Sequence record: PQ471516.1
Strand: one strand, 5' to 3'
DNA: 64,000 bases
Shown here: positions 23,642-51,826 of the stretch, piece by piece
How the letters are laid out: each line of letters begins with the position of its first letter
Position numbering within the stretch: position 1 is the first letter of the stretch
The notes under the pieces: model-generated
Database searches by the model: none
Seen by the model: the letters and a program-made list of their open reading frames with translations, nothing else
Told to the model about the DNA's origin: nothing
Program-made: the position numbers and the translations under genes

Positions 23642-23644
23642 TTA

Positions 23645-25331: not shown

Positions 25332-25570
25332 TGCATTACAAACATCTTCCAGAAATGGAATTCAGACGCATGTCCAAATCAATCAGACAAAAATACATTG
25401 CAACACAAAGGTACAACCTAAAGTACAAGCACAATATCCATGACGAACGATTGCTGTACGTAGTAGGGACCGAGTATCAGGATAGGGTTGTTAATTCATA
25501 TTTGTACGCCCTAAAAGAGTACATCCTATATCTTTGTAATAACACACAGCACATACAGGACATAAAATGA
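25331..25570 (+). CDS. LGTxxQ-family protein
   Basis: VVGTEYQD. Confidence 0.8.
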   Translation: MHYKHLPEMEFRRMSKSIRQKYIATQRYNLKYKHNIHDERLLYVVGTEYQDRVVNSYLYALKEYILYLCNNTQHIQDIK

Positions 25571-25887
25571 AATTTAATATCCTAAGAGTATCAAAAAGAG
25601 CGATTTATGCATATGAGTTTAATTATGATCAATTTGATGTAGATATCATTTTGTACAAGAACCGTGAAGGTGAAATGCTTTTTAAGTACCAAAATAGTGA
25701 AGCAGATAATATTCCTTTACCGGATTTAACCAAAATGCAAGAGGATGAATTCTTTCAGCAGAGCTTAGTATACGATATTGATTTTTATAGTATAGATATT
25801 CTTTTAGCTTTACAGAAAAAGATGCACGAAATCTTTAATGATTTAGCCCAAGGCGATGATAGTGCAAGGTTCGTATTCAATGTTTAG
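25567..25887 (+). CDS. FQ-motif family protein (short type)
   Basis: PDLT...EDEFFQQSLVYD. Confidence 0.85.
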   Translation: MKFNILRVSKRAIYAYEFNYDQFDVDIILYKNREGEMLFKYQNSEADNIPLPDLTKMQEDEFFQQSLVYDIDFYSIDILLALQKKMHEIFNDLAQGDDSARFVFNV

Positions 25888-26083
25888 AAACATAGATCCC
25901 AGTCAGTACGCAACCATGTACAGAGATTATTGGATGCAAAGTTCCAGTACCAAGTCCCTTGCGGAATTTCGTATGATATATTTTCTTGGTACAGAGAATC
26001 AAGAAGAAACGATGCTGGACTATCTTGAAGTACTAAAGGTTGAAGTACAAGATGAATACATATTAGGGGTTATAGAGCAGTGA
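25880..26083 (+). CDS. LGTxxQ-family protein
   Basis: FLGTENQE. Confidence 0.8.
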   Translation: MFRNIDPSQYATMYRDYWMQSSSTKSLAEFRMIYFLGTENQEETMLDYLEVLKVEVQDEYILGVIEQ

Positions 26084-26574
26084 AATCGAGATTCGTTTCA
26101 GAGTTCAGTACAGATGCGGTGTACGCTAAGGATTTAGTACAGTTATTAATTACATTGCTCAAGGCTAAGGATAATTCAGAAGTTCAAGATTTGTGTAGTT
26201 CTTGTATCCGAGATGCAGGTGGTAATTTGTATATTAAGATAGATGGATTAGAACGTCTTATATATAAACAATCAAAATTCATCCAAAGTTGGACATACCT
26301 TGATTTTGACAGTACATATTCAGCGTACACAAAAAGAAGTACAAAAACCTTTTTTACAATCCAGGGTAAAACGTATAATTTGTTAAAAGAGCCATTAACA
26401 GAAGAAATGTATTTCCAGATGCAATGCTTAGGATTAAGTACAGAAGCGTTAAATGCTTATGTGCTTATTGATGCTATGGAATATTTAGATTTAGATAAGT
26501 ACGTTCCAGACGGATGGAGAATGTCTTTACCTTCGTTATTTGCAGTGTACAATACAATACATGGGGAACCTTAA
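26080..26574 (+). CDS. FQ-motif family protein
   Basis: EEMYFQMQCL. Confidence 0.85.
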   Translation: MKSRFVSEFSTDAVYAKDLVQLLITLLKAKDNSEVQDLCSSCIRDAGGNLYIKIDGLERLIYKQSKFIQSWTYLDFDSTYSAYTKRSTKTFFTIQGKTYNLLKEPLTEEMYFQMQCLGLSTEALNAYVLIDAMEYLDLDKYVPDGWRMSLPSLFAVYNTIHGEP

Positions 26575-27085
26575 AGTGAATTTTAATGTAATTGATGTTC
26601 CTGAATTAGCAAAGAAGATTCAAACAATCCTGTACATAGGCAGTTCAATACGAAGTACAGGTGATTTCATCAGGACAGATAAAGTAAGAATGCAAGGTAT
26701 GCGTTCATCATATGATGTTAAAGGTATGTGCACATTTGATATGGTTTATACAAAATACGGAAAGGAAAAGAATGCAATATGTTTATTATCGTTTCCACCG
26801 AACCCTATAGCACCGAGAAATCCTAACAATACATTATGGTACGAGCAAGGTGCAGATACATTAGAGTTCAAGGGTACATTTTATGATGTAGAAGATATTC
26901 CAGCAACAGAAGAAGGAGCATTTCAGTACAGCCTATTGTATCCCGATGATGTAATATTTTATAAGAAGTTATTTTGGGAGTTAAACAATTTACCTCATTA
27001 CACCCCTAATTTTTCAATAGACCTTGAGTGCGTAGATACCGTATACGAAAGTTTAATGGAGTTCATTAGTTATGAAGTACAGTAA
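26561..27085 (+). CDS. FQ-motif family protein
   Basis: EEGAFQYSLLY. Confidence 0.85.
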   Translation: MGNLKVNFNVIDVPELAKKIQTILYIGSSIRSTGDFIRTDKVRMQGMRSSYDVKGMCTFDMVYTKYGKEKNAICLLSFPPNPIAPRNPNNTLWYEQGADTLEFKGTFYDVEDIPATEEGAFQYSLLYPDDVIFYKKLFWELNNLPHYTPNFSIDLECVDTVYESLMEFISYEVQ

Positions 27086-27662
27086 TCCAGAAGAGACAGT
27101 ATTTGAGTACACATATGAAAATGCTGTAGAGCTTTGTACAAAATTAAAAGAAGTCCTTCAAATATACAATTCCATTGTAAATGACCCAAAGAATAAAGAT
27201 AAAAATGTAATCCAAGTAAATGCATTTTGTTCCATAAACATAGCAAAAGACCATTCAGAATTACAGGTCCATAAAACACAAGATAACGAGGACAAATTCA
27301 GATTCATCAGGAATTATCCAATATCAGATGTTTTATCATATCTTAGTTTTCCACCTGGTCCTTGTTTGAGTAAAGAAGATACGGATTCATTTTGGTATAA
27401 TAGTACATTCCAGTACATGGGTATTAATAACAAGGGTTCAGATGCAACGGACAGGATTGAAGTGAATCAAAGTCCTAAAAGCGAAGAGGAATTCTTTCAG
27501 TACAGTACCCTTATGCATCCAAGAACAATTTTTTATTCATGCGTTTTAGATGCGTTAGTTGAATTAAAGAGTTCAGGTTTAGATTTACCGCATTTACGTT
27601 TCAACCCACAGAGCATTCCTAGTGTGTGGGAAATGTTCAAGAACGAGCCGCCTGTGTCGTAA
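27072..27662 (+). CDS. FQ-motif family protein
   Basis: EEEFFQYSTLM. Confidence 0.85.
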   Translation: MKYSNPEETVFEYTYENAVELCTKLKEVLQIYNSIVNDPKNKDKNVIQVNAFCSINIAKDHSELQVHKTQDNEDKFRFIRNYPISDVLSYLSFPPGPCLSKEDTDSFWYNSTFQYMGINNKGSDATDRIEVNQSPKSEEEFFQYSTLMHPRTIFYSCVLDALVELKSSGLDLPHLRFNPQSIPSVWEMFKNEPPVS

Positions 27663-27739
27663 GATACGGGCTTTTTTGTATTGACAAACGCAAAAGTACC
27701 AAGTACAATACAGATGTATATTAATAAAAGGAACATACC

Positions 27740-28261
27740 ATGAAACCCGTAATCGATTATGAAGTACCACAAACGTTCGAAGAGTGCAATGCGTACATCG
27801 ACAAGGTGCTTTGCATTTTCAAGGCATTCATTGAAGAGGACATTCCAACCTTTGATTACGAACATCCCACCCAAGGGTACAAAAACATGTACACGAGGAA
27901 TAACATGAATGGTATTATTCCTCACATCACGAGTTCAACGTTTTGGTACACAGATAGTTCAAATGGTTCAAAAGATTTCCTTGTAAGCGATTTGCATTTA
28001 AAAGAACCTTCATCAGTACCTATGCTGTTTGAGCCTATTCAATCAGGAGAAGAGTATTTTCAGTACAGCACCTTGTATACAGCATTTGAGTTATTTTGTA
28101 TTCAGATGTACGCAAGAACAAATGCTTACATTAAAGATAATCCAATCAATTTCAAAAGTGCGAAGATTGTCCATCCTGTATTTGCTGATTTATATGATTC
28201 AGTGTATTCAGGTAAAAAGCCAAAGTACACCCACACCGCGTATAGAGCGTTTCGTCCTTAA
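27740..28261 (+). CDS. FQ-motif family protein
   Basis: GEEYFQYSTLY; promoter TTGACA 27681-N17-TACAAT. Confidence 0.85.
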   Translation: MKPVIDYEVPQTFEECNAYIDKVLCIFKAFIEEDIPTFDYEHPTQGYKNMYTRNNMNGIIPHITSSTFWYTDSSNGSKDFLVSDLHLKEPSSVPMLFEPIQSGEEYFQYSTLYTAFELFCIQMYARTNAYIKDNPINFKSAKIVHPVFADLYDSVYSGKKPKYTHTAYRAFRP

Positions 28262-28270
28262 GGAGCTATA

Positions 28271-28882
28271 ATGAGTTACATGAGTTCACACAGATTATTA
28301 GATGTATTAAAGAAGCATCTTGTTTTCCTTCAGGACAAGTTACGTTCCTTTTCAGAGATATTCCCTGATGGTAGTAAGTTGGTAGTTCCTTTTCGTGCAC
28401 CCAATGTGAATGACCAGTTCGTAGTTCACATTAGTACAGATAATATTTCGTTGCGTATTATCAATTCAGATTTAGATTTATTCGGTGTAAGATTCAATAC
28501 AAAACAAACGGTATCGAGTTCGTCCCTAAACAAATGGGATTTTTGTATTGCTCACCCTAATAAAGCTGAAGAGATTTGGATACAAATCAGTGCAGATGGT
28601 CATGAGAGATCGCATTTTGCGTATTATCCTAAAACAGATAAGTTTCCAGAATCAGTGTATTACAAGAGAACAGATTATGAAACATTGGATTCATTTTTGT
28701 TCCAGCAGCAGATGTTTGAAGGAGTAAGAAATCAAGATGAAATCCAGAAGGACATTGATACAATCCTTGATATTCAAAGTTATCTTGATGAAGACATGTA
28801 CGTATATCATGGTAATTCAGTTATTTTTGAAAATGTATTACCGTCCTTTATCAATACATTACAAGATATTAAGGTGTTTTAA
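28271..28882 (+). CDS. FQ-motif family protein
   Basis: DSFLFQQQMF. Confidence 0.8.
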   Translation: MSYMSSHRLLDVLKKHLVFLQDKLRSFSEIFPDGSKLVVPFRAPNVNDQFVVHISTDNISLRIINSDLDLFGVRFNTKQTVSSSSLNKWDFCIAHPNKAEEIWIQISADGHERSHFAYYPKTDKFPESVYYKRTDYETLDSFLFQQQMFEGVRNQDEIQKDIDTILDIQSYLDEDMYVYHGNSVIFENVLPSFINTLQDIKVF

Positions 28883-29115
28883 TGATTTTATTCAATACAG
28901 GTCCGTGTTCCTTAGAAGTGATGTTTTCAAGAAATCGTTTATGGAATCAAAATTTCAGGGACGATACGTTGTTTCACAGGATGGTACAAACCTTCGAACA
29001 TGAGAAAGAAGAAGAATACATGCACAGAATCATGTACATAGTAGTCCTTAGTACACCTGAATATTACGAGCGTTTGAGAGAGTTCAATTCCAAGATACCA
29101 AAGGAGCCTATGTGA
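28882..29115 (+). CDS. Hypothetical protein
   Basis: Coupled to neighbours. Confidence 0.65.
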   Translation: MILFNTGPCSLEVMFSRNRLWNQNFRDDTLFHRMVQTFEHEKEEEYMHRIMYIVVLSTPEYYERLREFNSKIPKEPM

Positions 29116-29504
29116 AACCAGTACCGTTAAGATATCAATTTTGTGCTTACGCAGTGCAAATGTACAGTTCAGAGGGTATATGTCAATACGAGTTTGATAT
29201 TGAGTCACAGGAGACGAATGAAGAGGTGTACACGGTACGTTACCTTTACGGGAAGTACACCTTCGCTATCAAAGACAAGCACAGAAACATATTCCCTGTT
29301 CCTAATTTTGTGCACGAACCGGAGTTGGAGTTCCAGTACAGCACCTTAAGAGATGACATTCCTGTGCACAAGAAGATGCAGGATGTGCTGATAAAGTTCG
29401 TAGAATGTGTTATGGCGGTTGACAATTACCCGAATATCCTGTACATTACCTTTGATAGTTACGAAATCTTAGAAGATATGTTCGAGGGATGGGAATTATG
29501 TTAA
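29112..29504 (+). CDS. FQ-motif family protein (short type)
   Basis: PELEFQYSTLR. Confidence 0.85.
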   Translation: MKPVPLRYQFCAYAVQMYSSEGICQYEFDIESQETNEEVYTVRYLYGKYTFAIKDKHRNIFPVPNFVHEPELEFQYSTLRDDIPVHKKMQDVLIKFVECVMAVDNYPNILYITFDSYEILEDMFEGWELC

Positions 29505-29692
29505 GCGAAAATCAGATACGTATAGTTGACAGGATGGTATCCCTGCATATCAGTCAGTACCTTTATGATTCCAGAAGAGGTGTTGATACATGGGACATTA
29601 CAATGCAATGCATCAGGCTTTTTTATACGGATTTTAACAATGGATTAAAGTGGCTCCAAGAGAGAAAAGATGAAAAAGTACACCAAAAATGA
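29498..29692 (+). CDS. Hypothetical protein
   Basis: Coupled to neighbours. Confidence 0.65.
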   Translation: MLSENQIRIVDRMVSLHISQYLYDSRRGVDTWDITMQCIRLFYTDFNNGLKWLQERKDEKVHQK

Positions 29693-29864
29693 GTTTATAG
29701 TAGAAATCCAGTTCGTATTTCAAAAGTGGAAAGCCTTGGGTTTAGAGAATTTTCCGTATCAGGATTTTAAATTATTATATTTTTGGGGTAGTAATATGCA
29801 GGACGCTGTATTAAAAGAGTACCTAAAAGAGATGCAGTACAAGATACAGTACAAGAAGGAATAG
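29670..29864 (+). CDS. LGTxxQ-family protein (divergent)
   Basis: YFWGSNMQD. Confidence 0.75.
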   Translation: MKKYTKNEFIVEIQFVFQKWKALGLENFPYQDFKLLYFWGSNMQDAVLKEYLKEMQYKIQYKKE

Positions 29865-29866
29865 CA

Positions 29867-30091
29867 ATGAGTGTCAATCCAAGTCATGAAGTAGTATTTG
29901 ATTCGAGTATAGTACATTTAGTTGTAGAAATGGTTAATGAAGATTTCAAACAAGAAATGGATGAAAAACAATGGGAAATGCTTTTGGAGTTCATATTACA
30001 AAACATCAGGTCGTATTGGGTGGAGGCAGTTCGAGAAGAGATGTTTTGGAGGGGTGAAATTCAAATGATAAATAACGGCATTTTGGAATAA
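29867..30091 (+). CDS. Acidic hypothetical protein
   Basis: RBS AAGGA. Confidence 0.7.
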   Translation: MSVNPSHEVVFDSSIVHLVVEMVNEDFKQEMDEKQWEMLLEFILQNIRSYWVEAVREEMFWRGEIQMINNGILE

Positions 30092-30294
30092 AGAGAAGTG
30101 GCGGTTTTACAGGCCGATGTTTTAGGGGTCAAAAAAATTTCCGCTTTAACAAGGTGGAGATTATCTTTTATATATAGTGTTAGAATTGTGCATAAGCGTA
30201 GAAGGAATTTTCGAAAAAGAAAAAAGACGCGACGCAGCCACGATTCGGCCTGGAAATATATTTCTTTATCTTGTATTTTAATTTGGAGTTTATT

Positions 30295-30639
30295 ATGGAT
30301 TTTGATTATTCGGTTTACAGTATAAAGTACCATGATTCTTTTGAATTGTATTGTAATCTTGTAAAGGGTGATAGCAAGCACGATTGTGAGCAATTCCTGC
30401 GATACGATGGGAAACAATTTCATTTCTATGATTACTGCACTGGAGATAAAGAAGAAGTACCTGATTATACTGCACTGGATGATGCAGAACTATTTCAGGC
30501 TAGACTTGTATTTGATGCAAGATTAGTTTGTACTATTGAAGAGATGATTCCTATACAACAGGAATTAAAAGAACATTCCAAAAAGAAAGTCGAGTACGGA
30601 TATAATCATCGTTATCACTTTAATCTAGAGGATAAGTAA
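30295..30639 (+). CDS. FQ-motif family protein (short type)
   Basis: PDYTALDDAELFQARLVFD; RBS GGAG. Confidence 0.85.
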   Translation: MDFDYSVYSIKYHDSFELYCNLVKGDSKHDCEQFLRYDGKQFHFYDYCTGDKEEVPDYTALDDAELFQARLVFDARLVCTIEEMIPIQQELKEHSKKKVEYGYNHRYHFNLEDK

Positions 30640-31115
30640 TGAGTTTAGAAAGTGCATTAGAATTAGGTCGAAGGATAGTTCCTATTATTAATTTCTACCA
30701 AAAGAATTTATATAAGCTAGGATACTTCAATGATGAAATCCTGACTCCTGAAGAACTGGATTTGGGATACATGTGTATGTTAGCCTTTGGTCAGTATCAT
30801 ACTAGTGGTGATTGTGATGTGAATCTTAGTGGTGGATATCTTGATTTCGAGAGGAATAGTGCACTCCAATTCGTAGACAGAAATGGTTCAGTACAACGCA
30901 TTGAACCGGAAGAGTTTAAAGAATGTAGTACTATGACCGAGGATATGTATTTCCAGTTAAGTACTCTTTACAGTTCAGAGGCACTTGATGCAATGATACT
31001 TTTTGATTACTTATATGGCAGTGATGTTCCTAATTTTGTGTATCTAAGTCTTACTCGTTTGGATATTCTGGAAGAATTATATGAACAGGATTTATTAAAA
31101 CAGGTACATATATAA
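30639..31115 (+). CDS. FQ-motif family protein (long type)
   Basis: EDMYFQLSTLY. Confidence 0.85.
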   Translation: MSLESALELGRRIVPIINFYQKNLYKLGYFNDEILTPEELDLGYMCMLAFGQYHTSGDCDVNLSGGYLDFERNSALQFVDRNGSVQRIEPEEFKECSTMTEDMYFQLSTLYSSEALDAMILFDYLYGSDVPNFVYLSLTRLDILEELYEQDLLKQVHI

Positions 31116-31468
31116 TGGAATTTGAATTTGTAATATCGACACATTGTTTCAAGTTACAGCGTCAGTACTTTTGTAATTTAAACAAAGGTGATATGATACA
31201 TGCTGGGAATGAATATCTTCATTACAGTAGTGGTAAATTTACATTTGTTAATTACGATAATTATCTTTCTCCACACGAAGAGATGCTGGATTATACAGTA
31301 CTACCAGATGGTGAACTATTTCAGCAGTCCCTGGTATTTGATAAGAAGTACATTTGTTCTTTTGAGGAAGTTTGTGCTTTGCAGAAGATCATAAAAGAAT
31401 ACGATGAGAGTACTTCTGGGCGTGATATAATAATTAATGAATATAAGTTCAACCTAGAGGATATGTAA
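31115..31468 (+). CDS. FQ-motif family protein (short type)
   Basis: DYTVLPDGELFQQSLVFD. Confidence 0.85.
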   Translation: MEFEFVISTHCFKLQRQYFCNLNKGDMIHAGNEYLHYSSGKFTFVNYDNYLSPHEEMLDYTVLPDGELFQQSLVFDKKYICSFEEVCALQKIIKEYDESTSGRDIIINEYKFNLEDM

Positions 31469-31905
31469 TGAGTTTAGAAAGAGCATTAGAAATTGCTGAG
31501 TTGATTGATATGTGCAGAACTAAAATCAAAACTGACTGCCTCAATGGGTATCTATATCAGGAAGGCAATTCATATTACCGAATGTTATTTGATGAAAGTT
31601 CTGATAGTATTGAAATGTATGATGATAAGTTAGATACCAGATATACAGTTGAATGCGATGTTAGTTTAGAAGATAATTACATATTCTTTTGTAAGAACTC
31701 TAGTATTGCATTGAATTATAATGAGCTTCTCCCTTATTCAGTACTTGAAGGTAATTGGGGTAGTCCAGAATATTACTTCCAGCAAAGTACTATCTACAGT
31801 GAAGAAGTCCTTGATAAACTCGTCATTTTGTGGTACTTTAATAACACGAGTCCCAATAACTTCTACATGGACTTAGACATATTAGATGTAATGAAAGGGG
31901 GATAA
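31468..31905 (+). CDS. FQ-motif family protein (long type)
   Basis: PEYYFQQSTIY. Confidence 0.85.
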   Translation: MSLERALEIAELIDMCRTKIKTDCLNGYLYQEGNSYYRMLFDESSDSIEMYDDKLDTRYTVECDVSLEDNYIFFCKNSSIALNYNELLPYSVLEGNWGSPEYYFQQSTIYSEEVLDKLVILWYFNNTSPNNFYMDLDILDVMKGG

Positions 31906-31907
31906 AC

Positions 31908-32387
31908 GTGTCATTTGAAAGTGCCTTTATAGAAGCCCAACGAATCCATGAGTACATGATTCGTATTATTAATGATGATAATCCAAATATAACAAAGTAC
32001 TGTGATGCATCATGGACTGAGTACTACCTATGTACACCAGCACAAAAAAATTACATGTTGGATTCAAATACTCGTATTCTACATTTATGCCCTAATAGTA
32101 ATCACTTCTACTGTTGCAGTACAGCAGAGCACAGTACTATGGAGTTCAGTAGGAGTAGTCCTATTATTTTTTATAAATGGAATGTAGAGGGTTCTAACTA
32201 TACTGACTGTACACACCAGATAGATGCAGAAGTACTGGATGAGCCGTGGGATTCTTCTGATTATTATTTTCAGATGAGCACTGTGTACGAAGAAGATGTA
32301 CTTGACACTTTAGTACTGATGTGGTACTTTAAGCACAGAACAGATTATCCAGATTTCTATCTGGAGTACTACCACGACTTAGGCTAA
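31908..32387 (+). CDS. FQ-motif family protein (long type)
   Basis: SDYYFQMSTVY. Confidence 0.85.
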   Translation: MSFESAFIEAQRIHEYMIRIINDDNPNITKYCDASWTEYYLCTPAQKNYMLDSNTRILHLCPNSNHFYCCSTAEHSTMEFSRSSPIIFYKWNVEGSNYTDCTHQIDAEVLDEPWDSSDYYFQMSTVYEEDVLDTLVLMWYFKHRTDYPDFYLEYYHDLG

Positions 32388-32396
32388 GAGGATTAT

Positions 32397-32945
32397 ATGG
32401 ATTACACATTTAATGGTTTAGAGTACAGGCACTGTATTGCAATGGCTAAAGTACTGGAGTACGTTATGACCAGATTGCAATGCAATGAATTTCTTAAGCG
32501 AAATGACTTATATCTAAATTCCGATGGTTTCTTGTTTGCTGACAATGATGATATTGACTTTGATCGTTGCGTTCGTATTGGTAAAGAAACCATATCAAGA
32601 GCCGGATGTATGGGTGCAGTTCTTACGCATTGTATTTCTTTTTACCCAGATGGTCATACGATTCGTATTGTTCAAGGACATGAAAGCTCTTTTTCGTTTC
32701 AAGACAATCCAGATTTTGAATCGTTGTTCTTCCAGAACATTTTAGTACTTGAACCTATGAAAGTACTATATATCGTAGTGTTCAATTATTTGCACAACAT
32801 TAAATGCATAGATTCATTTGATATAGAAATGAGTCTTATGCGTATTATCAATCAAATACCTGAACTTCAGAGTATTACCGAAGAACCGTACTTCGACGAT
32901 TTCACAGAATTATATCGTATGCACCGCTTTGAAGGAGATGAATAA
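32397..32945 (+). CDS. FQ-motif family protein
   Basis: ESLFFQNILVL. Confidence 0.85.
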   Translation: MDYTFNGLEYRHCIAMAKVLEYVMTRLQCNEFLKRNDLYLNSDGFLFADNDDIDFDRCVRIGKETISRAGCMGAVLTHCISFYPDGHTIRIVQGHESSFSFQDNPDFESLFFQNILVLEPMKVLYIVVFNYLHNIKCIDSFDIEMSLMRIINQIPELQSITEEPYFDDFTELYRMHRFEGDE

Positions 32946-33427: not shown

Positions 33428-33430
33428 TCA

Positions 33431-33778: not shown

Positions 33779-33781
33779 TTT

Positions 33782-34162: not shown

Positions 34163-34163
34163 T

Positions 34164-34475: not shown

Positions 34476-34521
34476 TATTGACACTTGGGAGTTTTGTGCT
34501 ATAATATTTTTAGAGGTACTT

Positions 34522-37384: not shown

Positions 37385-37385
37385 T

Positions 37386-40517: not shown

Positions 40518-40520
40518 GAT

Positions 40521-42450: not shown

Positions 42451-42520
42451 GTGTTTAGGGCTTTACAGAGCGTTCTAGACGTGTTATAATGCGTATATAT
42501 TAATTGTTTAAGAGGCTATA

Positions 42521-44187: not shown

Positions 44188-44728
44188 TTTTCAAAATATG
44201 TACGACATGTGTAAGATTATGTCAAATTTCAGTACTAAGATTAAATCGGCTCCAGTAGCGGAAGTTCACATGTCCGACCGCTACTACACGTTCCGAGTAT
44301 CCAGTACTGGTGACAGTATTCGACTGTTCTTAAATGACCGACAGCAATTGTTTGATGTAGTCATTGTAGACCATACTACAAAGGGAAAATATGCATACAA
44401 TATGTATGCAAAAAATCGTTGGTTAGTAATTCGTAATACAATGCAACGATTACGTGCAGCTACAGATATAAACAGTACTGGTGATGATTACGATATTACT
44501 AACATTTTAGATGAATCTGTTTTTAATTTTGAAATGGATTTATCTGTTGATGATCCATTCCTGCGTGACATTTACAAGTTACATGGATGCGTGGTTCGTG
44601 GTACTAAAGATATCAAAGCTGTGTCAATTGAAGTATCCAGAATTCATGAACACAATGTGAACCTGGAATCATTGATTGATAAGATGAATACCAATTTCTT
44701 CTTTTGGAAGTGTAAGGATGAACTATGA
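44180..44728 (+). CDS. Hypothetical protein (possible degenerate FQ member)
   Basis: DESVFNFEMDL; start adjusted. Confidence 0.75.
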   Translation: MNNFQNMYDMCKIMSNFSTKIKSAPVAEVHMSDRYYTFRVSSTGDSIRLFLNDRQQLFDVVIVDHTTKGKYAYNMYAKNRWLVIRNTMQRLRAATDINSTGDDYDITNILDESVFNFEMDLSVDDPFLRDIYKLHGCVVRGTKDIKAVSIEVSRIHEHNVNLESLIDKMNTNFFFWKCKDEL

Positions 44729-45180
44729 CACGCGATGAGTGTATCCTATTATGTAAAGTTGTAGAGAAGATCTTAAGTGATCCTTCTCTTGAAAATAGTA
44801 AAGTACTGAAAAATAAAACACGCAGGTCGTGGACTGATATTGCACTTGTAAGTGATGATATCAATGTTGGAACTTTGTGGCCTTCGAGAACATATACACT
44901 AACAAGTGCAATACACGAAGAAAGTGTAGATTATGTAGGTGAGAAAACTTTCATCCACGGTAGTAGTACTACACCAATAATGCACATCATTGATTTAGTT
45001 GATATGGATGACTTTGATTCGTTATATCTTCAGTACTCTTCGACATATAATACTGAATTAATTTATCAATTGGTTCTTATTTCGAGGATTAGTTATTTGA
45101 TTAAAAATAACAATGATTATTCTTCGCTTTCACTTACGTTCGAATTACTACCTTTTGCAGAGGAATTCTTAAATGAGTAA
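44725..45180 (+). CDS. FQ-motif family protein
   Basis: DSLYLQYSSTY. Confidence 0.8.
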   Translation: MTRDECILLCKVVEKILSDPSLENSKVLKNKTRRSWTDIALVSDDINVGTLWPSRTYTLTSAIHEESVDYVGEKTFIHGSSTTPIMHIIDLVDMDDFDSLYLQYSSTYNTELIYQLVLISRISYLIKNNNDYSSLSLTFELLPFAEEFLNE

Positions 45181-45658
45181 TATCAGTGCACAAGATTACG
45201 TTAAGATTTACAATTTCATGAATAGCTTCTTTGGTCCTGAAACTAAAGAAGTACAACTAACTAAGAACTTACAGTTAGGTGTATACAGTAATACTTATGT
45301 AGGTATTAAGAATACATCAAGTACCACTGAATTTAATACAGATATGTTTCGTATTATCCGTAATACACATAATCGTGAAATTAGTACATTAACACCTAAT
45401 ACAATGATAGCTGAACCTCCGACGAAAAATATCAATGTTATCACATTCAATTCAGATAATGTCGTTGAGATTCCAGAATTTACTTCATTTGATGAATTAC
45501 AGTTTCAGTTGAGTACTCTATATAAAAATGAAAGTATTCTGACCTTCTTATCATATCTTAATAGTATTAATAATAATTATGTGGTTTATTTTGGTTCAAT
45601 CCAGTCTATTAGTATTACACAGGAATTACTTGATTATATTGATAGTATGGAGGAATAA
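45173..45658 (+). CDS. FQ-motif family protein
   Basis: DELQFQLSTLY. Confidence 0.85.
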   Translation: MSNISAQDYVKIYNFMNSFFGPETKEVQLTKNLQLGVYSNTYVGIKNTSSTTEFNTDMFRIIRNTHNREISTLTPNTMIAEPPTKNINVITFNSDNVVEIPEFTSFDELQFQLSTLYKNESILTFLSYLNSINNNYVVYFGSIQSISITQELLDYIDSMEE

Positions 45659-46239
45659 TGGAACTAAATTTCAGTACTTTACTAAAGTTCATTCATCCAG
45701 TACTTTGGGTACTAAAGAATAGAAAATCAGAACATGATACTGTTCAGTACAGTAATGATTACTACAGTCTATTGTGCGGGGTTTATGCTGATGGTGGTTC
45801 CATTATTATGGAGTACAAAGAAGCCAGTGCAAGGGGAACCAATCTAAGAATCGAATTACGCCTACCACTGTACGTAATTAAAAAGGATACACTACTCTTA
45901 AGGGACATTGATTCAAAAAACCGCATTCGTGCTAATATGTTTATTGCCCAGAATACTGAAGAAGAACTATCAGTAAGTGATAACACCGAAAAGACAGAGA
46001 CAGGTGCATATACTATTGACACCTTCAGTGAAGAATGGTATTTTCAAAACAGCCTTCTTCATCATTTACGCCCGTATCAGGATACAAAATCGTTATGGGA
46101 TATCTATCAAGTACTGAAATGTTGGGACGGGGGTTCTATTGATATGTTATCAGAGATGACTTCAAACTATTCCAACAGCACTATTGACACGGATGAAGTA
46201 CTGAAAAAACTATGGAGCATGGTTGCTACTATAGACTAA
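45658..46239 (+). CDS. FQ-motif family protein
   Basis: EEWYFQNSLLH. Confidence 0.85.
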   Translation: MELNFSTLLKFIHPVLWVLKNRKSEHDTVQYSNDYYSLLCGVYADGGSIIMEYKEASARGTNLRIELRLPLYVIKKDTLLLRDIDSKNRIRANMFIAQNTEEELSVSDNTEKTETGAYTIDTFSEEWYFQNSLLHHLRPYQDTKSLWDIYQVLKCWDGGSIDMLSEMTSNYSNSTIDTDEVLKKLWSMVATID

Positions 46240-46305
46240 AAAAACGAGCCGGAGTGTTGACTTCGGCTTTTTTGTTTGGTACTATATCTAAAAATAGGAG
46301 GATTT

Positions 46306-46860
46306 ATGAGTTCAAGTTGTGACACCTTGTTTGAGCTATGCACCGATTCGCAGTTTGAAGGATGGGTGGATAAAGTTAATCAATTAAGCGAACGTTATGT
46401 ACGTTTCGTACAACTCGGTGAGTCTTTAAGTAACTGGCCGTTTACTGAGACTGGGGAAAGAGGAAGATTAAGTTATAAATGTGATGCAGTGCGTTTAATT
46501 TTATCATATAATGATTACCCATTACTAAGATTATATCCACGTTCAAGAAATTCCAATAATTTGAATAATATAATCACACCACTATTTTTAACTTATAATA
46601 GTCACAGTACTACACGATTAAAAATCAACAATGATATGCCAGGGGACGATATATTAACCGTGTATGACATAATGTACAGTCCAGATGAGCATTTCCAGTG
46701 CAGTACTCTATATAGTGTTCCTACCTATGAGAACGCTATTAAAACATTGGAGTTGATGCACAGTATTCAAGTCCAAAGTGAACTATCATTAACGATGGAG
46801 TATTGTTTCTTCAATCATGATATTCTTAATAATCTAGATACAATTTTATACGGGTACTAA
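46306..46860 (+). CDS. FQ-motif family protein
   Basis: PDEHFQCSTLY; RBS AGGAGG. Confidence 0.85.
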   Translation: MSSSCDTLFELCTDSQFEGWVDKVNQLSERYVRFVQLGESLSNWPFTETGERGRLSYKCDAVRLILSYNDYPLLRLYPRSRNSNNLNNIITPLFLTYNSHSTTRLKINNDMPGDDILTVYDIMYSPDEHFQCSTLYSVPTYENAIKTLELMHSIQVQSELSLTMEYCFFNHDILNNLDTILYGY

Positions 46861-46861
46861 T

Positions 46862-47476
46862 ATGCGTAAAGAATATGTTCAATCTTTTGCTATGTTGCAG
46901 CATTTAGAAGAAGTCCTACCACAGTGCATCAATTTTCAAAAAAGTATATACAAGAAGTACAGTATTTGTTCTTATATGTCACTCCAACATAAGAAGTCGA
47001 ATTTCTATACAGTGTATGATGATTATAATATCTTCTTAAAAAAGAACGGGTGTGACCTTCTTCATATTGAAAAGTGCAGTCCTAACAAAAATGACTACAG
47101 TGATGAATATGTGTTTATGCCTGAATATGATGAAGTGTATATTAACCCATGTTCGGATTTCACATTTCTGTTGCACAGCGATGACGATGACTCTGTTTAT
47201 GATGTTTATGGCGTGTATAATGCAAAGTCTAAGATAATGTCATATGATGGCATTGACTTTAAAATTAAAACTAAAGATGATTGCGAAGCAGCACTTGCAC
47301 AAATCTTGACATTAACTAATGTAACTATCAGTACAGACGAAGTGTGGAGTATGATTTCAGTACTTACTTCTTTATACAGAAATAAAGATATACGTAATTT
47401 TAATATATCTTTTACTGAAACGTTTGATATTAAAAATAAACTGGTAACTGGAAATGAACTATTCGAATCTAATTGA
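46862..47476 (+). CDS. Hypothetical protein
   Basis: 204-aa ORF coupled to neighbours. Confidence 0.8.
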   Translation: MRKEYVQSFAMLQHLEEVLPQCINFQKSIYKKYSICSYMSLQHKKSNFYTVYDDYNIFLKKNGCDLLHIEKCSPNKNDYSDEYVFMPEYDEVYINPCSDFTFLLHSDDDDSVYDVYGVYNAKSKIMSYDGIDFKIKTKDDCEAALAQILTLTNVTISTDEVWSMISVLTSLYRNKDIRNFNISFTETFDIKNKLVTGNELFESN

Positions 47477-48050
47477 AAATGCAAGAAACCTGAAAGGAAT
47501 CAAAAACCTTTGGAGTACCTATGAATTTAATTTTCCTAAAAGTTCAGGTCTAGAAAGTTTAAATGTAGATATCAAATTCCGTTATAATAATGGCATGACT
47601 GGAAAGATTAGGCTACATAAACTGGGTGTTACGTTCTATGATGACTGCGACCACAGTGTAGGTTTGGTAGAGTTCATTGACAACATGCAACAGGGTGAAA
47701 ATTACATATGTAGTAGGATTGGTTCTGATGATTCTGAATTTATCATCGGTAATGGTTTACAGTTCCATCTCACTGAAGACTGGGATGAAGATTATTATGT
47801 GTATGATTATGAAAGTAAAAACATTTTTGATGAGAGTGATACTCTTGTCACAGACCTCAACGAGCGTATCTTCCAGAAGAGTACTGTCCAAGATAATGTA
47901 AGAACTCCAGAAGAAATTGTTGTCATGTGCAATGCGTATGATACACTTATGGATATTATGAAAACTGATGGTATCCAGTACATTTATCTTTGCGATGATG
48001 TATACGTGAACCAAATTCTGAAACGACTTGAGACATTTACTAAGAGGTAG
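47454..48050 (+). CDS. FQ-motif family protein
   Basis: NERIFQKSTVQ. Confidence 0.8.
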   Translation: MNYSNLIENARNLKGIKNLWSTYEFNFPKSSGLESLNVDIKFRYNNGMTGKIRLHKLGVTFYDDCDHSVGLVEFIDNMQQGENYICSRIGSDDSEFIIGNGLQFHLTEDWDEDYYVYDYESKNIFDESDTLVTDLNERIFQKSTVQDNVRTPEEIVVMCNAYDTLMDIMKTDGIQYIYLCDDVYVNQILKRLETFTKR

Positions 48051-48052
48051 TT

Positions 48053-48469
48053 ATGTTACTGTATCATGCCAGCCCAGTTAAAATTGAAAACTTTTACATT
48101 CCATTCGGTGGTTTGCATCTGGGCGGCAAGAACAGTGCACTGGAAGCTGCCCTACGCAAGCTGAGAAGCCCTCTGAACGTCGTAGACGCTAATACGGTAC
48201 ATCTGCATACCTGTGAGGTTAACGTCTCTAAAGTGTATTACAGCGATGATTTGGGTAGTGATGATTCATGGCGTGAGCTTATTGAGTACTGCCAAGCTAA
48301 TGGCTATGATGCAGTACAGTACAAGAATGAGTTCGAGCCTGATGCTGTTCCTAGCTACATGATTTGGGATGTATCTAACATTCGCATCGTTGAAGTTGAT
48401 CCTATGCATATGGATGATGCAGAAATGATTTTGGAGGATTTCTATGCAGAATATGAAGGACAATCTTGA
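48053..48469 (+). CDS. ADP-ribosyltransferase-like protein (ART-PolyVal-like)
   Basis: LLYHAS...F...GGLHLG and GYDAVQYKNEFE...SYMIW...I match the YHG(S/T)...GYDG..Y.N..E....Y..F pattern. Confidence 0.55.
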   Translation: MLLYHASPVKIENFYIPFGGLHLGGKNSALEAALRKLRSPLNVVDANTVHLHTCEVNVSKVYYSDDLGSDDSWRELIEYCQANGYDAVQYKNEFEPDAVPSYMIWDVSNIRIVEVDPMHMDDAEMILEDFYAEYEGQS

Positions 48470-48977
48470 GTGCACTAAGGTAATCTTGAAGATTGCTGAA
48501 ATTTTCAGTACTTTATTGAGCGATGGAAAGATTACAGATGATCTGGTTCTTCCATACCCGTGGAAATTTTCTAAATTTTCTATATTTTATAAATTAGAAT
48601 ACAAAGAACATGCTGTACTGGAGTTTAATCCTAAAGCTGATTTCATTGAGAATAGTACACTGTTCGGGAAGAGTGGGTGCTATACATCGGACTTCAAAAA
48701 GATTACTACGCATATTCGTCCTTCTCCAGAAGAAAACGAGTTCCATTCATTTCTGTATCCTGAATTTAAGTTAACAGAAGAACTACTATTTCAGTACTCA
48801 TTATTGTTCGAAGATGTACAAGATTTAGAGTTCTATAAAGAGTTAGTAGAAACTTTTAAGAATGTGAACCTTAAAAAAGATATTCTTATATTCTGGTTCA
48901 TGGAGTATATTTCGAAGGATTTGCTAGATGAGTTTCTTCTAAATATGACAGCAATTAAGGAGAAGTTATATGCTTGA
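48453..48977 (+). CDS. FQ-motif family protein
   Basis: EELLFQYSLLF. Confidence 0.85.
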   Translation: MKDNLECTKVILKIAEIFSTLLSDGKITDDLVLPYPWKFSKFSIFYKLEYKEHAVLEFNPKADFIENSTLFGKSGCYTSDFKKITTHIRPSPEENEFHSFLYPEFKLTEELLFQYSLLFEDVQDLEFYKELVETFKNVNLKKDILIFWFMEYISKDLLDEFLLNMTAIKEKLYA

Positions 48978-49443
48978 CATTTTAGGTAATATTGATACAG
49001 TAAACTATTTCGTACAAGATGCATTGGTTGGGATTACATCTAAGCCATTGCAGGTTCGCAACAATTTCCATCAGGGTGATGGATACATAGTGGACATTAC
49101 TGAACCGAAAAAGAATGTATTCAATGTTAACATTGCAACAACAGGTCGTAACAATATCGCACGAATTATCATTGACAAGAATGAAATTGTTCTTCGTTAC
49201 AATGCTAAGTTCATGATGTTCTTCAAGAGTAAGACTGACATGTTCAGTACTAATCTCTTTGATGAACCATTTAAATTAGAAGATATCGAAGCAGTGTTCT
49301 TTACACAGAGTACGTGCTTTAAGTTCAAAGATGTAGAATTCAGTCCTGATGTAATGGCTGAAACTTTACAAATGCTAAGGATTATCTATTATGGGTTTAA
49401 TGAGTTTGCACAAGAACGAAACCAGGTTAACAACTGTAGATGA
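48970..49443 (+). CDS. FQ-motif family protein (divergent)
   Basis: EAVFFTQSTCF. Confidence 0.8.
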   Translation: MLDILGNIDTVNYFVQDALVGITSKPLQVRNNFHQGDGYIVDITEPKKNVFNVNIATTGRNNIARIIIDKNEIVLRYNAKFMMFFKSKTDMFSTNLFDEPFKLEDIEAVFFTQSTCFKFKDVEFSPDVMAETLQMLRIIYYGFNEFAQERNQVNNCR

Positions 49444-49849
49444 AACAATCGAGGCAGTACTGGCGAATCTTAGCTCCAAGAGGGATTACTGGTACAAAGG
49501 TATCCGTCTGTATCGTTTAACTGATCGTCACAATCAGGTTACAAATCAGTACGGTACACAGCAAGTCAAGTTCACTGCCTCAAAACGTAACACAGGGTTT
49601 GAAATTTCATGTGTAGTGTTAAATCTAAGTAAAAAACTTCTTGAATGCAATGAAGATTGTGCTATAATGTATGCATCTGGTAACGAAGAGATCAAGATTG
49701 ATTACAGTACACTAGATGAAATTGACTTCTTTCAGTACGAATGCATTGGCATTCAGACTCTGGGAGTTTCTCATGATAAACTGAAGAAACTAATTCATAC
49801 ATTAAAGGGTATAATTGAACATGCAAGTAACTCCGCGTCTAAAGCTTAA
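49400..49849 (+). CDS. FQ-motif family protein
   Basis: DYSTLDEIDFFQYECIG; start uncertain. Confidence 0.8.
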   Translation: MSLHKNETRLTTVDETIEAVLANLSSKRDYWYKGIRLYRLTDRHNQVTNQYGTQQVKFTASKRNTGFEISCVVLNLSKKLLECNEDCAIMYASGNEEIKIDYSTLDEIDFFQYECIGIQTLGVSHDKLKKLIHTLKGIIEHASNSASKA

Positions 49850-50324
49850 TTTAGAAAAAATTGCTGATTGTCTTCGTACTAACAATATGGATCATAGTCT
49901 TTCGATTACAAGTGACCATATCCAATGTAGTACTAATGATTATACCGTACTGTTCGGGTTTCATAGCCTACGTTTGTCAGTAGTAAATAATCATGATGAC
50001 ACAGCAATTGTCATTACACCTTGTGATGTACTGAACAATGAAGGTGAAGTACTTCACAAGAAACAAACCGTATTCCATATCTTCAGGGGTGATGAGCCAC
50101 AAGCATTGGAATACGATACACTGAACGTTGATAGTGGTGAATTGTTCCAGTTGGGTTTAGTACACGATTGTACTTTCATGGATAACCGAGTAATTCTTCC
50201 TTTGTTGTTGAATATTCTGGTTAACCTTACAACATCTTCAATCCGACACTTCAACGATTCTATTTTAGTACAGGCGATGATAAACGTTTCAGAGGCAATC
50301 GAGGAATACAAAGTCGCCAGTTAA
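49821..50324 (+). CDS. FQ-motif family protein
   Basis: SGELFQLGLVH. Confidence 0.85.
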   Translation: MQVTPRLKLNLEKIADCLRTNNMDHSLSITSDHIQCSTNDYTVLFGFHSLRLSVVNNHDDTAIVITPCDVLNNEGEVLHKKQTVFHIFRGDEPQALEYDTLNVDSGELFQLGLVHDCTFMDNRVILPLLLNILVNLTTSSIRHFNDSILVQAMINVSEAIEEYKVAS

Positions 50325-50364
50325 CCAATGCACAGGGAGTGCGATAAAGGATCAAGGATAGATC

Positions 50365-50838
50365 ATGGAGACGAAAACTGTTGAGAACGGAAAGATAGAT
50401 GACATTTTAGATTTGGACGCATTTAAAGTTCATGATATAATGTTCAATGTTAAAGACATTATTCAGTGTCTTTTCTTATGTAGCAAAACTATGCATGACT
50501 ACTTTCACAACCCAAATACTAACATCTTTATACTTACTATTAGTACTGAAAACTCTTTCATCATGGGTATGCCTATGAGTACTAATGAAAAGTACATTGA
50601 TAGTGTAATCCGTAATAATGAGAACATAACCCCACAATCTGAAGTTCATAAAAAGAAAAACACTTATACAATTAAAGATGACAAGATAATGATGTGCTGC
50701 ACTAAAGGTTTCATCTTAGATAATTTTAAAATCAAAGATAGTTATCATGATTTTAGAGTATCGGAGAAACAAACTAATGTAGTTTTATATGCCACCGATA
50801 TTGAAAGCCTAACAGTTAAAGATCCTGATTTGGAGTAA
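50365..50838 (+). CDS. Hypothetical protein
   Basis: RBS AAGGA. Confidence 0.8.
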   Translation: METKTVENGKIDDILDLDAFKVHDIMFNVKDIIQCLFLCSKTMHDYFHNPNTNIFILTISTENSFIMGMPMSTNEKYIDSVIRNNENITPQSEVHKKKNTYTIKDDKIMMCCTKGFILDNFKIKDSYHDFRVSEKQTNVVLYATDIESLTVKDPDLE

Positions 50839-50840
50839 TT

Positions 50841-50972
50841 ATGGCTAAAAATGTAAACAACTTCGTTCAGAAACACATGAATGAGTTTAACAAACCTCAA
50901 ACCCATGTGGATCGCAAAAAAGCGATGAAGAATGGAAAAACAAAACACAAGTCGAGATATATTCTCGACTAA
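50841..50972 (+). CDS. Small basic protein of a type common in T4-like phages (43 aa)
   Basis: KHMNEFNKPQTHVDRKKAMKNG..KHK; RBS GGAG. Confidence 0.65.
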   Translation: MAKNVNNFVQKHMNEFNKPQTHVDRKKAMKNGKTKHKSRYILD

Positions 50973-50992
50973 TTTTTTTGCCTGGAGAAAGT

Positions 50993-51826
50993 ATGAAAGA
51001 ATTTGATTACAAAAGTAAGTCAGTACTGGAATACATTGAATTACTAAATTCTAAAAATATTCCATTCGATGATACCAAGCTCCTTGGAAATGGAGATGAA
51101 AATTCATATAGTACTGAAAACTATGTAATCATTATTTCAAATGCAGCACCTGATATTGACATTACTGTACATAAGAAAAATAATACCGCAGTGTTTATGT
51201 ATACTCAAGATAGTAAATCAGAGTACTTACATTTCAGAGATATGAATTACTACAAAGAGAATGGTGAATTTATACTCAAATACAATGTACTAAAGAATAT
51301 CGAATTAAAAAAAGCCCGATACTTTGATGGTGCTTATGACGTTAAAAGTTCAGATAAGCTTTGTATATTCACAATGCATAAAAATGTAGAAAAAGACAAT
51401 GGATGGGTTGAATTTGAAACTAAGTTCAATGAACATGAAGTTTCAAATTTGTCAATACAAGAACGTTATGAAGGTTCAGATGTAGTGTGCAGTGCTGCTT
51501 ACTTTCGTGCATATGATGACAAAACGAAACGTATACAAATGCAAAACATTGACATTACGTTCAATGAAGGGTATAGTACTGTTACTATTTCTTCAGGATA
51601 TCGAAACAAGTTTACATTTGAGGTAGCAGTTCCAGACGGGTCAATACTACACATGTTTGACCCTGAATATATGTTCCAAGTTGAATTAACACTTGACACT
51701 GAGCAGTACGATAAATTACAATTTATTAGAAATTCAATCCAAGAAAAATTGGAATTATACCACTTACTAGGTGGAAAGAATCACAAAGCAACAATAGCAT
51801 TACAAAATATCAAAAGTAAAAGGTAG
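50993..51826 (+). CDS. Hypothetical protein with C-terminal FQ-like motif
   Basis: PEYMFQVELTL; RBS GGAG. Confidence 0.8.
   Translation: MKEFDYKSKSVLEYIELLNSKNIPFDDTKLLGNGDENSYSTENYVIIISNAAPDIDITVHKKNNTAVFMYTQDSKSEYLHFRDMNYYKENGEFILKYNVLKNIELKKARYFDGAYDVKSSDKLCIFTMHKNVEKDNGWVEFETKFNEHEVSNLSIQERYEGSDVVCSAAYFRAYDDKTKRIQMQNIDITFNEGYSTVTISSGYRNKFTFEVAVPDGSILHMFDPEYMFQVELTLDTEQYDKLQFIRNSIQEKLELYHLLGGKNHKATIALQNIKSKR

Follow-up and report, generated by a model that had tools for sequence, protein, structure and literature searches.

Several large DNA viruses of animals carry lineage-specific tandem expansions of dozens of divergent paralogs, among them the MGF360/505 genes of African swine fever virus, the ankyrin/PRANC genes of poxviruses and the US22 genes of herpesviruses, and in some animal-virus multigene families a small constant module is set on variable binding domains that have a role in host interaction. 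Here we describe a comparable array in a bacterial virus: a family of small proteins, referred to below as the FQ family, encoded at 25567-51826 of a 64,000-nucleotide stretch (the window) of sequence record PQ471516.1. This record is the genome of Escherichia phage Turkey5, a jumbo myovirus of 351,311 bp, and the window corresponds to its positions 1-64000; a close relative of Turkey5, JNE01, with 96% identity at the DNA level, has been placed in Asteriusvirus (the 121Q/PBECO4 group). Like the multigene families of large DNA viruses, the array is tandem, on one strand and restricted to one lineage, with 45 members in 26 kb and paralogs that are retained under selection. It differs from them in having a different and apparently new predicted fold, a constant part that is a 13-residue helix block rather than a domain, and a bacterial host.

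Three other described systems resemble this locus in part. The internal proteins of T4-type phages likewise combine a short constant peptide with hypervariable bodies at a phage locus; however, the T4 capsid-targeting signal lies at the extreme N-terminus, is removed by the prohead protease and directs packaging, whereas the FQ block is internal and predicted to be structured, and no member has been found in virions. The SUKH/Imm polyimmunity arrays are likewise tandem sets of small, highly divergent alpha+beta paralogs, but the FQ family has no Pfam match (including SMI1_KNR4-type domains) or PDB fold match, and it occupies the early region of a lytic phage with no adjacent toxin genes. F-box proteins carry a domain of 40-50 residues (PF00646) that binds Skp1, in contrast to a constant block of 13 residues and no Pfam domain in the 10+10 proteins scanned, which included longer and solitary members checked for a fused known domain. 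The literature on the array itself consists of passing remarks, without analysis of its motif, structure, evolution or function. A tandem gene array in 121Q was noted by Hua et al. 2017 (PMC5646251), and could be either the FQ family or an adjacent family of 57-88 amino acids (aa); a 2026 review repeats a passing remark on such an array, and the genome papers on RaK2 and CBB remark on paralogs; in this literature, tandem duplication is recognised as a route of genome growth (PMC5646251; PMC3622015; PMC5259590). The zinc-ribbon expansion of phage G is a comparable lineage-specific paralog expansion (Iyer et al. 2021, PMC7824862), and the matching passages of that comparative study do not mention the FQ expansion. 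Individual members are already clustered in PHROGs, but they are split there into many unlinked groups of unknown function, and neither the motif and the fold nor the link that the FQ block makes among these groups is recorded.

Genes of the window lie on the + strand nearly throughout, and the deposited labels between 25 and 52 kb all read 'hypothetical protein'. An initial annotation of the window had reported about 45 proteins at 25567-51826 that share an acidic FQ motif, and this count was confirmed: 45 of the 57 + strand genes, which form approximately seven sigma70-type operons, carry the motif, four of them (28271, 44725, 48970 and 50993) in degenerate form. The motif, (T/S/D)-E-E-x-phi-F-Q-x-S-(T/L)-(V/L/I)-(Y/W/H/F)-(D/S/E/N), lies about two-thirds of the way along the protein (the F is at a median 0.67 of its length) and at a constant distance from the C-terminus (median 50 residues). 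The concern that it might be no more frequent than expected from composition was raised at the outset, and was dispelled by shuffling the residues of each protein. A strict form, [DE]x0-3-phi-FQx[ST][TLVIC][LVIMT], was found in 19 of the 57 genes of 25.5-52 kb, against a shuffle mean of 0.03 and maximum of 1, and a loose form, an acidic residue no more than five aa upstream of FQ, in 40 of the 57 (shuffle mean 8.6, maximum 17). Outside this interval, 100 genes yielded six loose and no strict matches, and a six-frame count gave 18 strict motifs on the + strand (three frames) and none on the - strand. Among three outliers that had been proposed beyond the array, the gene at 60822 was supported as a distant member by a broader profile (E=3e-5), but those at 53004 and 54626 were not. 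Further solitary members are found near 100.6, 116.5, 308.4, 313.6, 329.2 and 347.1 kb of the Turkey5 genome, which was scanned on either side of 150-301 kb. No tie to the family was found for the motif-less array genes 34164, 37744, 44180, 46862, 48053 and 50365, and these genes are thus uninformative on whether the fold survives without the motif.

The anatomy of the motif was derived from 211 non-redundant sequences anchored on the F (position 0). Conservation is limited to a block of 13 residues with sharp edges, information falling below 0.5 bit on either flank. The block begins with T (33%), S (27%) or D (14%) at -5, followed by E (74%) or D (11%) at -4 and E (71%) or D (10%) at -3; Y, L or F precedes the central F at -1, Q (98%) or M (1%) follows it at +1, and the block continues with S (82%) at +3, T (48%) or L (40%) at +4, V, L or I at +5, Y, H, W or F at +6, and D, S, E or N at +7. 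Positions -5 and +7 would hold helix N-cap-type residues, -5 capping the motif helix and +7 the helix after it. The Q is exchanged for M alone, a two-base change, while single-step replacements are missing from the six most frequent residues at this position, which looks like a steric, packing-type constraint. Short and long forms of the protein differ strongly at -6, -2, -1, +5 and +6 (p 1e-5 to 1e-16), but not at E-4, Q+1 or S+3 (p >=0.47). On an ideal helix over -4 to +5, as in the short-form model described below, the class-dependent positions make up one face and E-4, E-3, F0, Q+1, S+3 and +4, which are invariant, the opposite one. We read the class-dependent face as packing against the variable body; the invariant face would either contact the constant helical module or serve as a surface site common to all members.

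Outside this block, sequence similarity among members is slight. BLAST links only small sub-clusters of 8, 5, 4, 2 and 2 genes. Iterative hidden Markov models (HMMs) built from either the long (~145-200 aa) or the short (~105-130 aa) cluster converged on the same 36-37 genes, none of them outside 25.5-50.3 kb, but this convergence is carried by the motif, since bodies without motif and tail went unrecognised in a leave-one-out profile (0 of 43 members; median 2.3 bits, no better than non-family controls). With C-terminal tails alone, 4 of 43 members were recognised. When 286 bodies from several phages were compared, they fell into 181 BLAST clusters, and 21 sub-family body profiles gave an hhalign probability of at least 50% in 5 of 210 pairs (0 with reversed-sequence controls). 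The N-terminal two-thirds of these proteins, which the initial annotation called unrelated-looking, are therefore just that at the level of sequence, and its phrase of a constant peptide on variable bodies describes them accurately. A 50-nucleotide (nt) repeat at two gene junctions in the array indicates that a pair of one short and one long gene was duplicated as a unit.

Two members were modelled with AlphaFold2. The long member at 30639-31115, modelled from a paralog alignment, reached a predicted local distance difference test score (pLDDT) of 80 and a predicted template modelling score (pTM) of 0.73, with the order N-terminal helix, four strands, motif helix (101-108), helix (113-126), strand (133-137) and C-terminal helix. 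The adjacent short member at 31115-31468, modelled from 31 short forms of several phage genera, reached pLDDT 89 and pTM 0.84, with five strands, motif helix (65-74), helix (83-99) and strand (107-112). The two models suggest a common core of beta-meander, motif helix, long helix and closing strand, in which the motif is among the most confidently predicted blocks (10-residue block means of 96 in the short and 90-93 in the long model). Both models place the motif as an integral helix that joins the beta-sheet to the helical half, rather than as the free docking peptide originally envisaged. Foldseek searches of the PDB with both models returned no solved relative (best E 0.9 and 0.26, TM <=0.42), and the significant matches in BFVD were nearly all uncharacterised proteins of SP27, 121Q, RaK2, GAP32 and fHe-Yen9-04. 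NCBIfam and PDB-sequence profile searches gave no family match, and members matched only PHROGs of unknown function (phrog_9317, 12674, 15629, 13866, 34017, 19795, 35972 and 27741; E 1e-5 to 1e-52). PADLOC matched no family member among ten array proteins, a result that is uninformative on anti-defence because its models cover defence systems. The family thus appears undescribed, as had been supposed, and its predicted fold is apparently a previously undescribed alpha/beta fold.

An exhaustive profile search of 1.84 billion representative proteins gave only 145 matches (93-200 aa), 141 of them with FQ; a word-indexed homolog search with the family alignment was too insensitive, giving four proteins. 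In IMG/VR, matches to a degenerate motif-coding DNA pattern were nearly confined to contigs of 345-378 kb, from which 59 members were harvested. Only jumbo phages of the RaK2/121Q/GAP32 type carry the family, with 30-50 copies in each genome: at least 42 members occupy the syntenic place (gp404c-gp466c) in phAPEC6, and RaK2 has no fewer than 32. Between the Turkey5 window and the syntenic phAPEC6 locus we found 53 collinear reciprocal best hits (rho 0.99). Family orthologs in this pair are 21-58% identical, compared with 63-89% for the remaining genes within the array or directly behind it; a phage ClpP-like gene at a distance of 25 kb shares 96% identity with its PBECO4-type orthologs. In the close pair Turkey5 and JNE01, the ratio of nonsynonymous to synonymous substitution rates (dN/dS) is 0.26 for the whole family, with 0.31 in the body, 0.10 in the motif and 0.21 in the tail, and 0.14-0.28 in neighbouring genes. 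The family is therefore under purifying selection as one-to-one orthologs, and collinearity, low dN/dS and low long-term identity together indicate that the array is old, that each paralog has been kept, and that divergence has been much faster than in the rest of the genome.

The few intergenic gaps of the array hold near-consensus sigma70 or extended -10 promoters, often directly after an intrinsic terminator, and most of these elements are kept at syntenic positions in phAPEC6, though the flanking proteins are only ~30% identical. In the CBB genome paper, the equivalent region of short open reading frames with RpoD-like promoters was assigned to early, host-takeover genes (PMC5259590). Judged by promoter type, the array operons are presumably read early by host RNA polymerase. 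Their products are acidic (median isoelectric point 4.7, net charge -9) and aromatic-rich, and a crude hydrophobicity threshold found a membrane-like segment in 2 of 44 members (32397 and 43609); a cytoplasmic location would fit these proteins.

What, then, is conserved at the motif? The initial annotation observed that it is often encoded by TT(C/T)CAGTAC or AGTACT, and allowed for a shuffling role at the DNA level; a DNA element might be selected here as a site of recombination, shuffling or protein binding rather than for its peptide. These sequences do occur at the motif, where AGTACT often encodes S-T, and the motif Q prefers CAG to CAA (35:9, against a background of 100:138; p=5e-6). However, AGTACT is not specific to the motif: the window holds 275 copies against 20.3 +/- 4.4 expected (~13-fold), in all coding frames and at 87 intergenic sites, and the hexamer is also enriched in phAPEC6 (107 against 13.5) and RaK2 (154 against 13.4). 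Further, the F codons are unbiased (TTT 25, TTC 20), DNA repeats at the motif are short and imperfect (17-40 nt, 65-96% identity), the motif is in frame on the + strand only, and a check of synonymous sites between Turkey5 and JNE01 found them free to vary (dS 0.092 at the motif, not below the 0.063-0.075 of the remainder of the same genes), so that the constraint is on protein and not on DNA. Since the AGTACT excess extends across genome, clade and coding sequence, the DNA pattern at the motif is a by-product of coding and oligonucleotide bias, and we regard a DNA-level role as barely credible. A processing site is also improbable, if not quite to the same degree: a Gln-specific protease would cut after the Q of E-E-x-Y-F-Q-x-S and free a C-terminal module of ~50 residues, in agreement with the constant distance to the C-terminus. 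Sites of 3C/NIa-type proteases read E-x-x-Y-x-Q followed by S or G, with cleavage after the Q, and the motif resembles them at P6, P3, P2 and P1; yet P1' is variable and the conserved S falls at P2', Q-to-M variants are kept in orthologs, and a helix among the most confident blocks of the models would be a poor substrate. In 214 kb of genome annotation no 3C/NIa-like protease appears, the annotated proteases there being ClpP-type. Packaging into the virion, with the motif as a capsid or inner-body targeting signal and the proteins injected like those of T4, is a very remote prospect, hardly likelier than the DNA element. The T4 internal proteins do offer a precedent of a constant targeting peptide on variable bodies. 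An inner body is present in phAPEC6 (PMC7247149), but gp400-466 are not among the 62 proteins of its virion proteome (PMC7247149), and the RaK2 virion proteins map to two other genome clusters, with ORF337-435 all 'hypothetical' (PMC3622015). The capsid targeting suggested initially is thus not upheld, as the motif is also internal and structured, and the promoters are of the sigma70 early rather than the late type.

An adaptor arrangement deserves more weight, although we consider it rather unlikely. Here the invariant acidic-F-Q-S face would dock one common hub while the variable bodies recruit different targets, as in F-box proteins. Such a hub might be a protease or unfoldase (of host or phage), RNA polymerase, the sliding clamp or a modifying enzyme of the phage. 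In its favour, the 13-residue block is sharply bounded with invariant polar residues, and E-4, E-3, F0, Q+1 and S+3 share a helix face that does not co-vary with body class, whereas the opposite face does. The phage also encodes candidate hubs, namely three ClpP-like subunits, a Ser/Thr kinase, a phosphatase, a sirtuin-like deacylase and a GNAT acetyltransferase. Against it, the models predict the motif with high confidence as a helix built into a folded domain, not as a flexible peptide, and the exchange of Q with M only suggests packing over an exposed hydrogen bond. The ClpP-like genes are much more widespread than the FQ family, so that their co-occurrence is no evidence for a protease hub. 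For the clamp, Q-x-S-L-x-aromatic resembles the bacterial beta-clamp-binding hexapeptide, which is a QL[SD]LF or QLxLxL peptide in a terminal or flexible segment. Q-x-S-(T/L)-(V/L/I)-aromatic fits this consensus in part, but the resemblance is short and degenerate, and the FQ motif lies in or beside a structured helix. A gp45 clamp homolog was not reported in RaK2 (PMC3622015). The boldest form of this idea, which we think unlikely, is that the ~50 paralogs are interchangeable substrate-recognition subunits docking one hub via the E-E/F-Q/S face, with bodies that deliver host proteins for degradation or modification. If it were true, candidates for the hub would be the sliding clamp of the host or ClpP-type proteases of the phage acting together with an AAA+ unfoldase of the host, the delivered proteins would be defence systems and nucleoid or transcription factors, and the system would be a bacterial-virus analogue of F-box/SCF targeting. 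As to the location of the enzyme genes, the PQ471516.1 annotation places three ClpP-type/ATP-dependent protease subunits outside the window at 74424-75119, 78140-78751 and 80141-80743, and a Ser/Thr phosphatase and a sirtuin-like deacylase at 68421-69164 and 80978-81730, all of them outside the structural module; in the window are a weak kinase-like gene at 16023-16607 (below the Pfam cut-off) and a GNAT acetyltransferase gene at 11888-12244.

The best-supported account, which we give about an even chance of being correct, is that of an ancient clade-specific family of early, non-virion host-interaction proteins, in which diversified bodies are built on a constant helical keystone. Under this account, the small, acidic proteins that RaK2/121Q/GAP32-type jumbo myoviruses encode in tandem in sigma70-type operons would be cytoplasmic, non-virion proteins, each made of two parts: (i) a beta-meander body, diverged past sequence recognition and with an optional N-terminal helix, and (ii) an unchanging C-terminal module, in which the motif helix is followed by the long helix and the closing beta-strand. 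The 13-residue block would supply the helix N-cap (T/S/D), the first helix (E-E-x-phi-F-Q-x-S) and a linker (T/L-V/L/I-aromatic-D) tying body to module, with positions -6, -2, -1, +5 and +6 adapting to body type. The invariant face (E-4, E-3, F0, Q+1 and S+3) would act as fold keystone and possibly as a shared interaction site, and the diversified bodies would recognise different targets, forming a battery of host-takeover or anti-defence binders. The host-interaction role itself we put forward at about even odds; it is suggested by the gene class, the acidity, the accelerated long-term divergence with purifying selection and the retention of individual paralogs, and fast long-term divergence of orthologs is typical of host-interaction genes. 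Target binding by the bodies and a structural role of F and Q are inferences. Of the interpretation first offered for this locus, the constant peptide on variable bodies and the novelty of the family are thereby retained, but the free docking peptide, capsid targeting and DNA shuffling are not.

Several observations count against this account. At 2.3-4.8 bits, the polar E-E, Q and S are far more strongly conserved than ordinary core positions of these proteins (0.3-0.8 bits), and the invariant residues form one helix face that is indifferent to body type; a shared binding site explains both features no less well than a purely structural role would. Part of the short/long co-variation may stem from the shared ancestry of the short forms and not from packing. 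Homology of the bodies is not demonstrable by sequence, the proposed common fold being drawn from two models, whose alignments were both anchored by the motif, and from the tandem arrangement. Finally, an anti-defence function would follow from gene class and evolutionary pattern alone.

All members of the array are encoded on the + strand. It opens with a short form of 106 aa at 25567-25887 (motif EDEFFQQSLVYD), followed by members of 164 aa with a GTG start (26080-26574, EEMYFQMQCLGL), 169 aa (26576-27085, EEGAFQYSLLYP), 196 aa (27072-27662, EEEFFQYSTLMH) and 173 aa (27740-28261, GEEYFQYSTLYT). The degenerate gene at 28271-28882 (203 aa, DSFLFQQQMFEG) reads FQQQ and is weak (hhalign probability 13%); beyond it are a member of 130 aa (29112-29504, PELEFQYSTLRD) and a short form of 114 aa (30295-30639, DAELFQARLVFD), which adjoins the modelled long form of 158 aa (30639-31115, EDMYFQLSTLYS) and short form of 117 aa (31115-31468, DGELFQQSLVFD). 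Next come members of 145 aa (31468-31905, PEYYFQQSTIYS), 159 aa with a GTG start (31908-32387, SDYYFQMSTVYE), 182 aa (32397-32945, ESLFFQNILVLE; identity to the JNE01 ortholog just 78%), 160 aa (32945-33427, EDYYFQQNTLHK), 115 aa, a short form (33431-33778, EAFMFQESLVWE), and 126 aa (33782-34162, EEGFFQLSLLYN). A further short form of 103 aa (34522-34833, EEELFQFSLVWE) precedes members of 154 aa (34834-35298, EEGFFQLETMYY), 178 aa (35295-35831, EEQCFQLRCTDE), 166 aa (36024-36524, ADSYFQYSFVYD) and 180 aa with a GTG start (36511-37053, DAALFQYSTLYS), then three short forms of 112 aa (37046-37384, AAKLFQIHTIWS; JNE01 ortholog not found), 122 aa (37386-37754, EGELFQLSTVWD) and 117 aa (38237-38590, EGELFQNMCVLP; the deposit puts its start at 38336).

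The Q is replaced by M in three members, of 195 aa (38584-39171, EESFFMHSTLYS), 157 aa (39232-39705, SEDYFMNLFLFP) and 172 aa (41913-42431, EEGRFMLSTVLD); between the last two are members of 162 aa (39698-40186, EDSYFQYLCIHD), 113 aa, a short form (40176-40517, TEELFQMSCSDD), 131 aa (40521-40916, SEEIFQYSLVHK), 155 aa (40917-41384, PENFFQQSLLYP) and 181 aa (41381-41926, EEEEFQFSLIQD). Downstream are members of 179 aa (42521-43060, ESTYFQMCTLHD), 189 aa (43047-43616, ESSWFQYSLLDN) and 192 aa (43609-44187, QGKVFQMITVED), a degenerate one of 151 aa in which F is replaced by L (44725-45180, DSLYLQYSSTYN), and members of 161 aa (45173-45658, DELQFQLSTLYK), 193 aa (45658-46239, EEWYFQNSLLHH), 184 aa (46306-46860, PDEHFQCSTLYS), 198 aa (47454-48050, NERIFQKSTVQD) and 177 aa (48444-48977, EELLFQYSLLFE). 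The degenerate member at 48970-49443 (157 aa, EAVFFTQSTCFK) reads FFTQST, with one residue inserted between F and Q. Its neighbour at 49391-49849 (152 aa, EIDFFQYECIGI) is absent from the deposited Turkey5 annotation, but is 100% conserved in JNE01 and has an ortholog in phAPEC6. The array ends with a member of 167 aa (49821-50324, SGELFQLGLVHD) and a doubtful, degenerate one of 277 aa with a weak motif near its C-terminus (50993-51826, PEYMFQVELTLD; HMM E=0.025); the solitary distant member at 60822-61511 (229 aa, EEEHFQTLMFRQ) lies outside it on the same strand.

Candidate transcription signals in the gaps, also on the + strand, begin with an intrinsic terminator (27650-27671) followed by the promoter TTGACA-17-TACAAT (together 27650-27709), of which the terminator and -35 are kept at the syntenic phAPEC6 site. 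A consensus promoter, TTGACA-16-TATAAT with the TG of an extended -10, is found at 34478-34505, and an extended -10 promoter (TGTGATATAAT) conserved in phAPEC6 at 39168-39197. At 42430-42490 a terminator precedes TTTACA-17-TGTTATAAT; phAPEC6 has an identical terminator and -35, with the -10 one base off (TGTTATACT). A terminator overlapping the promoter TTGACT-17-TACTAT lies at 46246-46285, its hairpin and TTGACT conserved in phAPEC6, and a terminator-like hairpin at 50950-50970, likewise conserved, closes the array before 50993. A near-consensus sigma70 or extended -10 promoter occupies the gap at 52149-52176. Individual operons of the array span 27740-30091, 30295-34475, 34522-39171, 39232-42431, 42521-46239 and 46306-50838.

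The upstream part of the window is organised differently. In gaps of 1-20000 (e.g., 1061-1154, 2063-2149, 3419-3511, 13922-14009 and 17052-17137) there are dozens of copies of a stereotyped unit, one per small gene, in which AGTACT abuts a -35-like TTGCAA or TTGACA and/or forms an extended -10 (AGTACTGTATAAT), and is followed, just before the ribosome-binding site, by a conserved hairpin of the 5' untranslated region, GGGGAA(T/C)(A/G)GTTCCCC. The FQ array promoters are plainer sigma70 promoters without these AGTACT and hairpin features. Examples of AGTACT lie at 1070, 1373/1387, 5458/5478, 7600/7622 and 12515/12535, an extended form (CAGTACTG) occurs 55 times, and two stretches, 20309-23216 and 26035-30926, are free of the hexamer; the excess could reflect a binding site, a DNA modification target or a promoter element. 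A repeated unit of ~100 nt, in which a hairpin with TTGACT is followed by TATTAT and by a conserved, transcript-like stretch that ends in CCCAYAGGGTGCAYAARTGTA, is present at 9569-9680, 11239-11330, 13302-13410, 16608-16720 and 18866-18990 (five exact-pattern copies against 0 expected), with diverged copies near 2465-2533. This unit, a candidate small RNA or regulatory leader family, had no Rfam match, and an Rfam scan of the window gave no match. An 80-nt sequence is perfectly duplicated in tandem at 20194-20353 (2.0 copies, 100% identity), in a 541-nt non-coding gap that separates the early small-gene region from a second tandem paralog family. The latter comprises 19 proteins of 57-88 aa (20749-26083 and 35864-36037) with an invariant G-T-x-x-Q (consensus LGTNYQE), 27% mean column identity and no Pfam match; phAPEC6 has an equivalent run of ~28 small open reading frames upstream of its FQ array. 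Elsewhere in PQ471516.1, a 14-gene run on the - strand at 330035-345731 includes 11 genes annotated as RCC1- or HERC1-like and one as a Kelch-domain gene. It would add to this genome a third paralog expansion, unrelated to the other two. By annotation, its possible counterparts in phAPEC6 are the 'DNA condensation protein' genes gp003-009, gp549 and gp551, whose products are in the virion proteome.

Among the jumbo myoviruses that infect E. coli, Klebsiella and Cronobacter, the principal ones are the phages that carry the FQ family, including 121Q, PBECO4, phAPEC6, RaK2, K64-1, GAP32 and their relatives; several have been studied for therapy. At least 30 Asteriusvirus genomes have been sequenced, and phage Sharanji plates on E. 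coli MG1655. The carriers devote to the family ~26 kb and ~50 genes, or 7-8% of the genome. The family also offers a compact scaffold of ~110 aa that tolerates near-total resurfacing. The combination of a new predicted fold, a sharp 13-residue signature, extreme divergence and paralog retention points to a large, organised host interface, and the role of the F-Q block would show how jumbo phages that do not form a nucleus take over their cells or evade defence.

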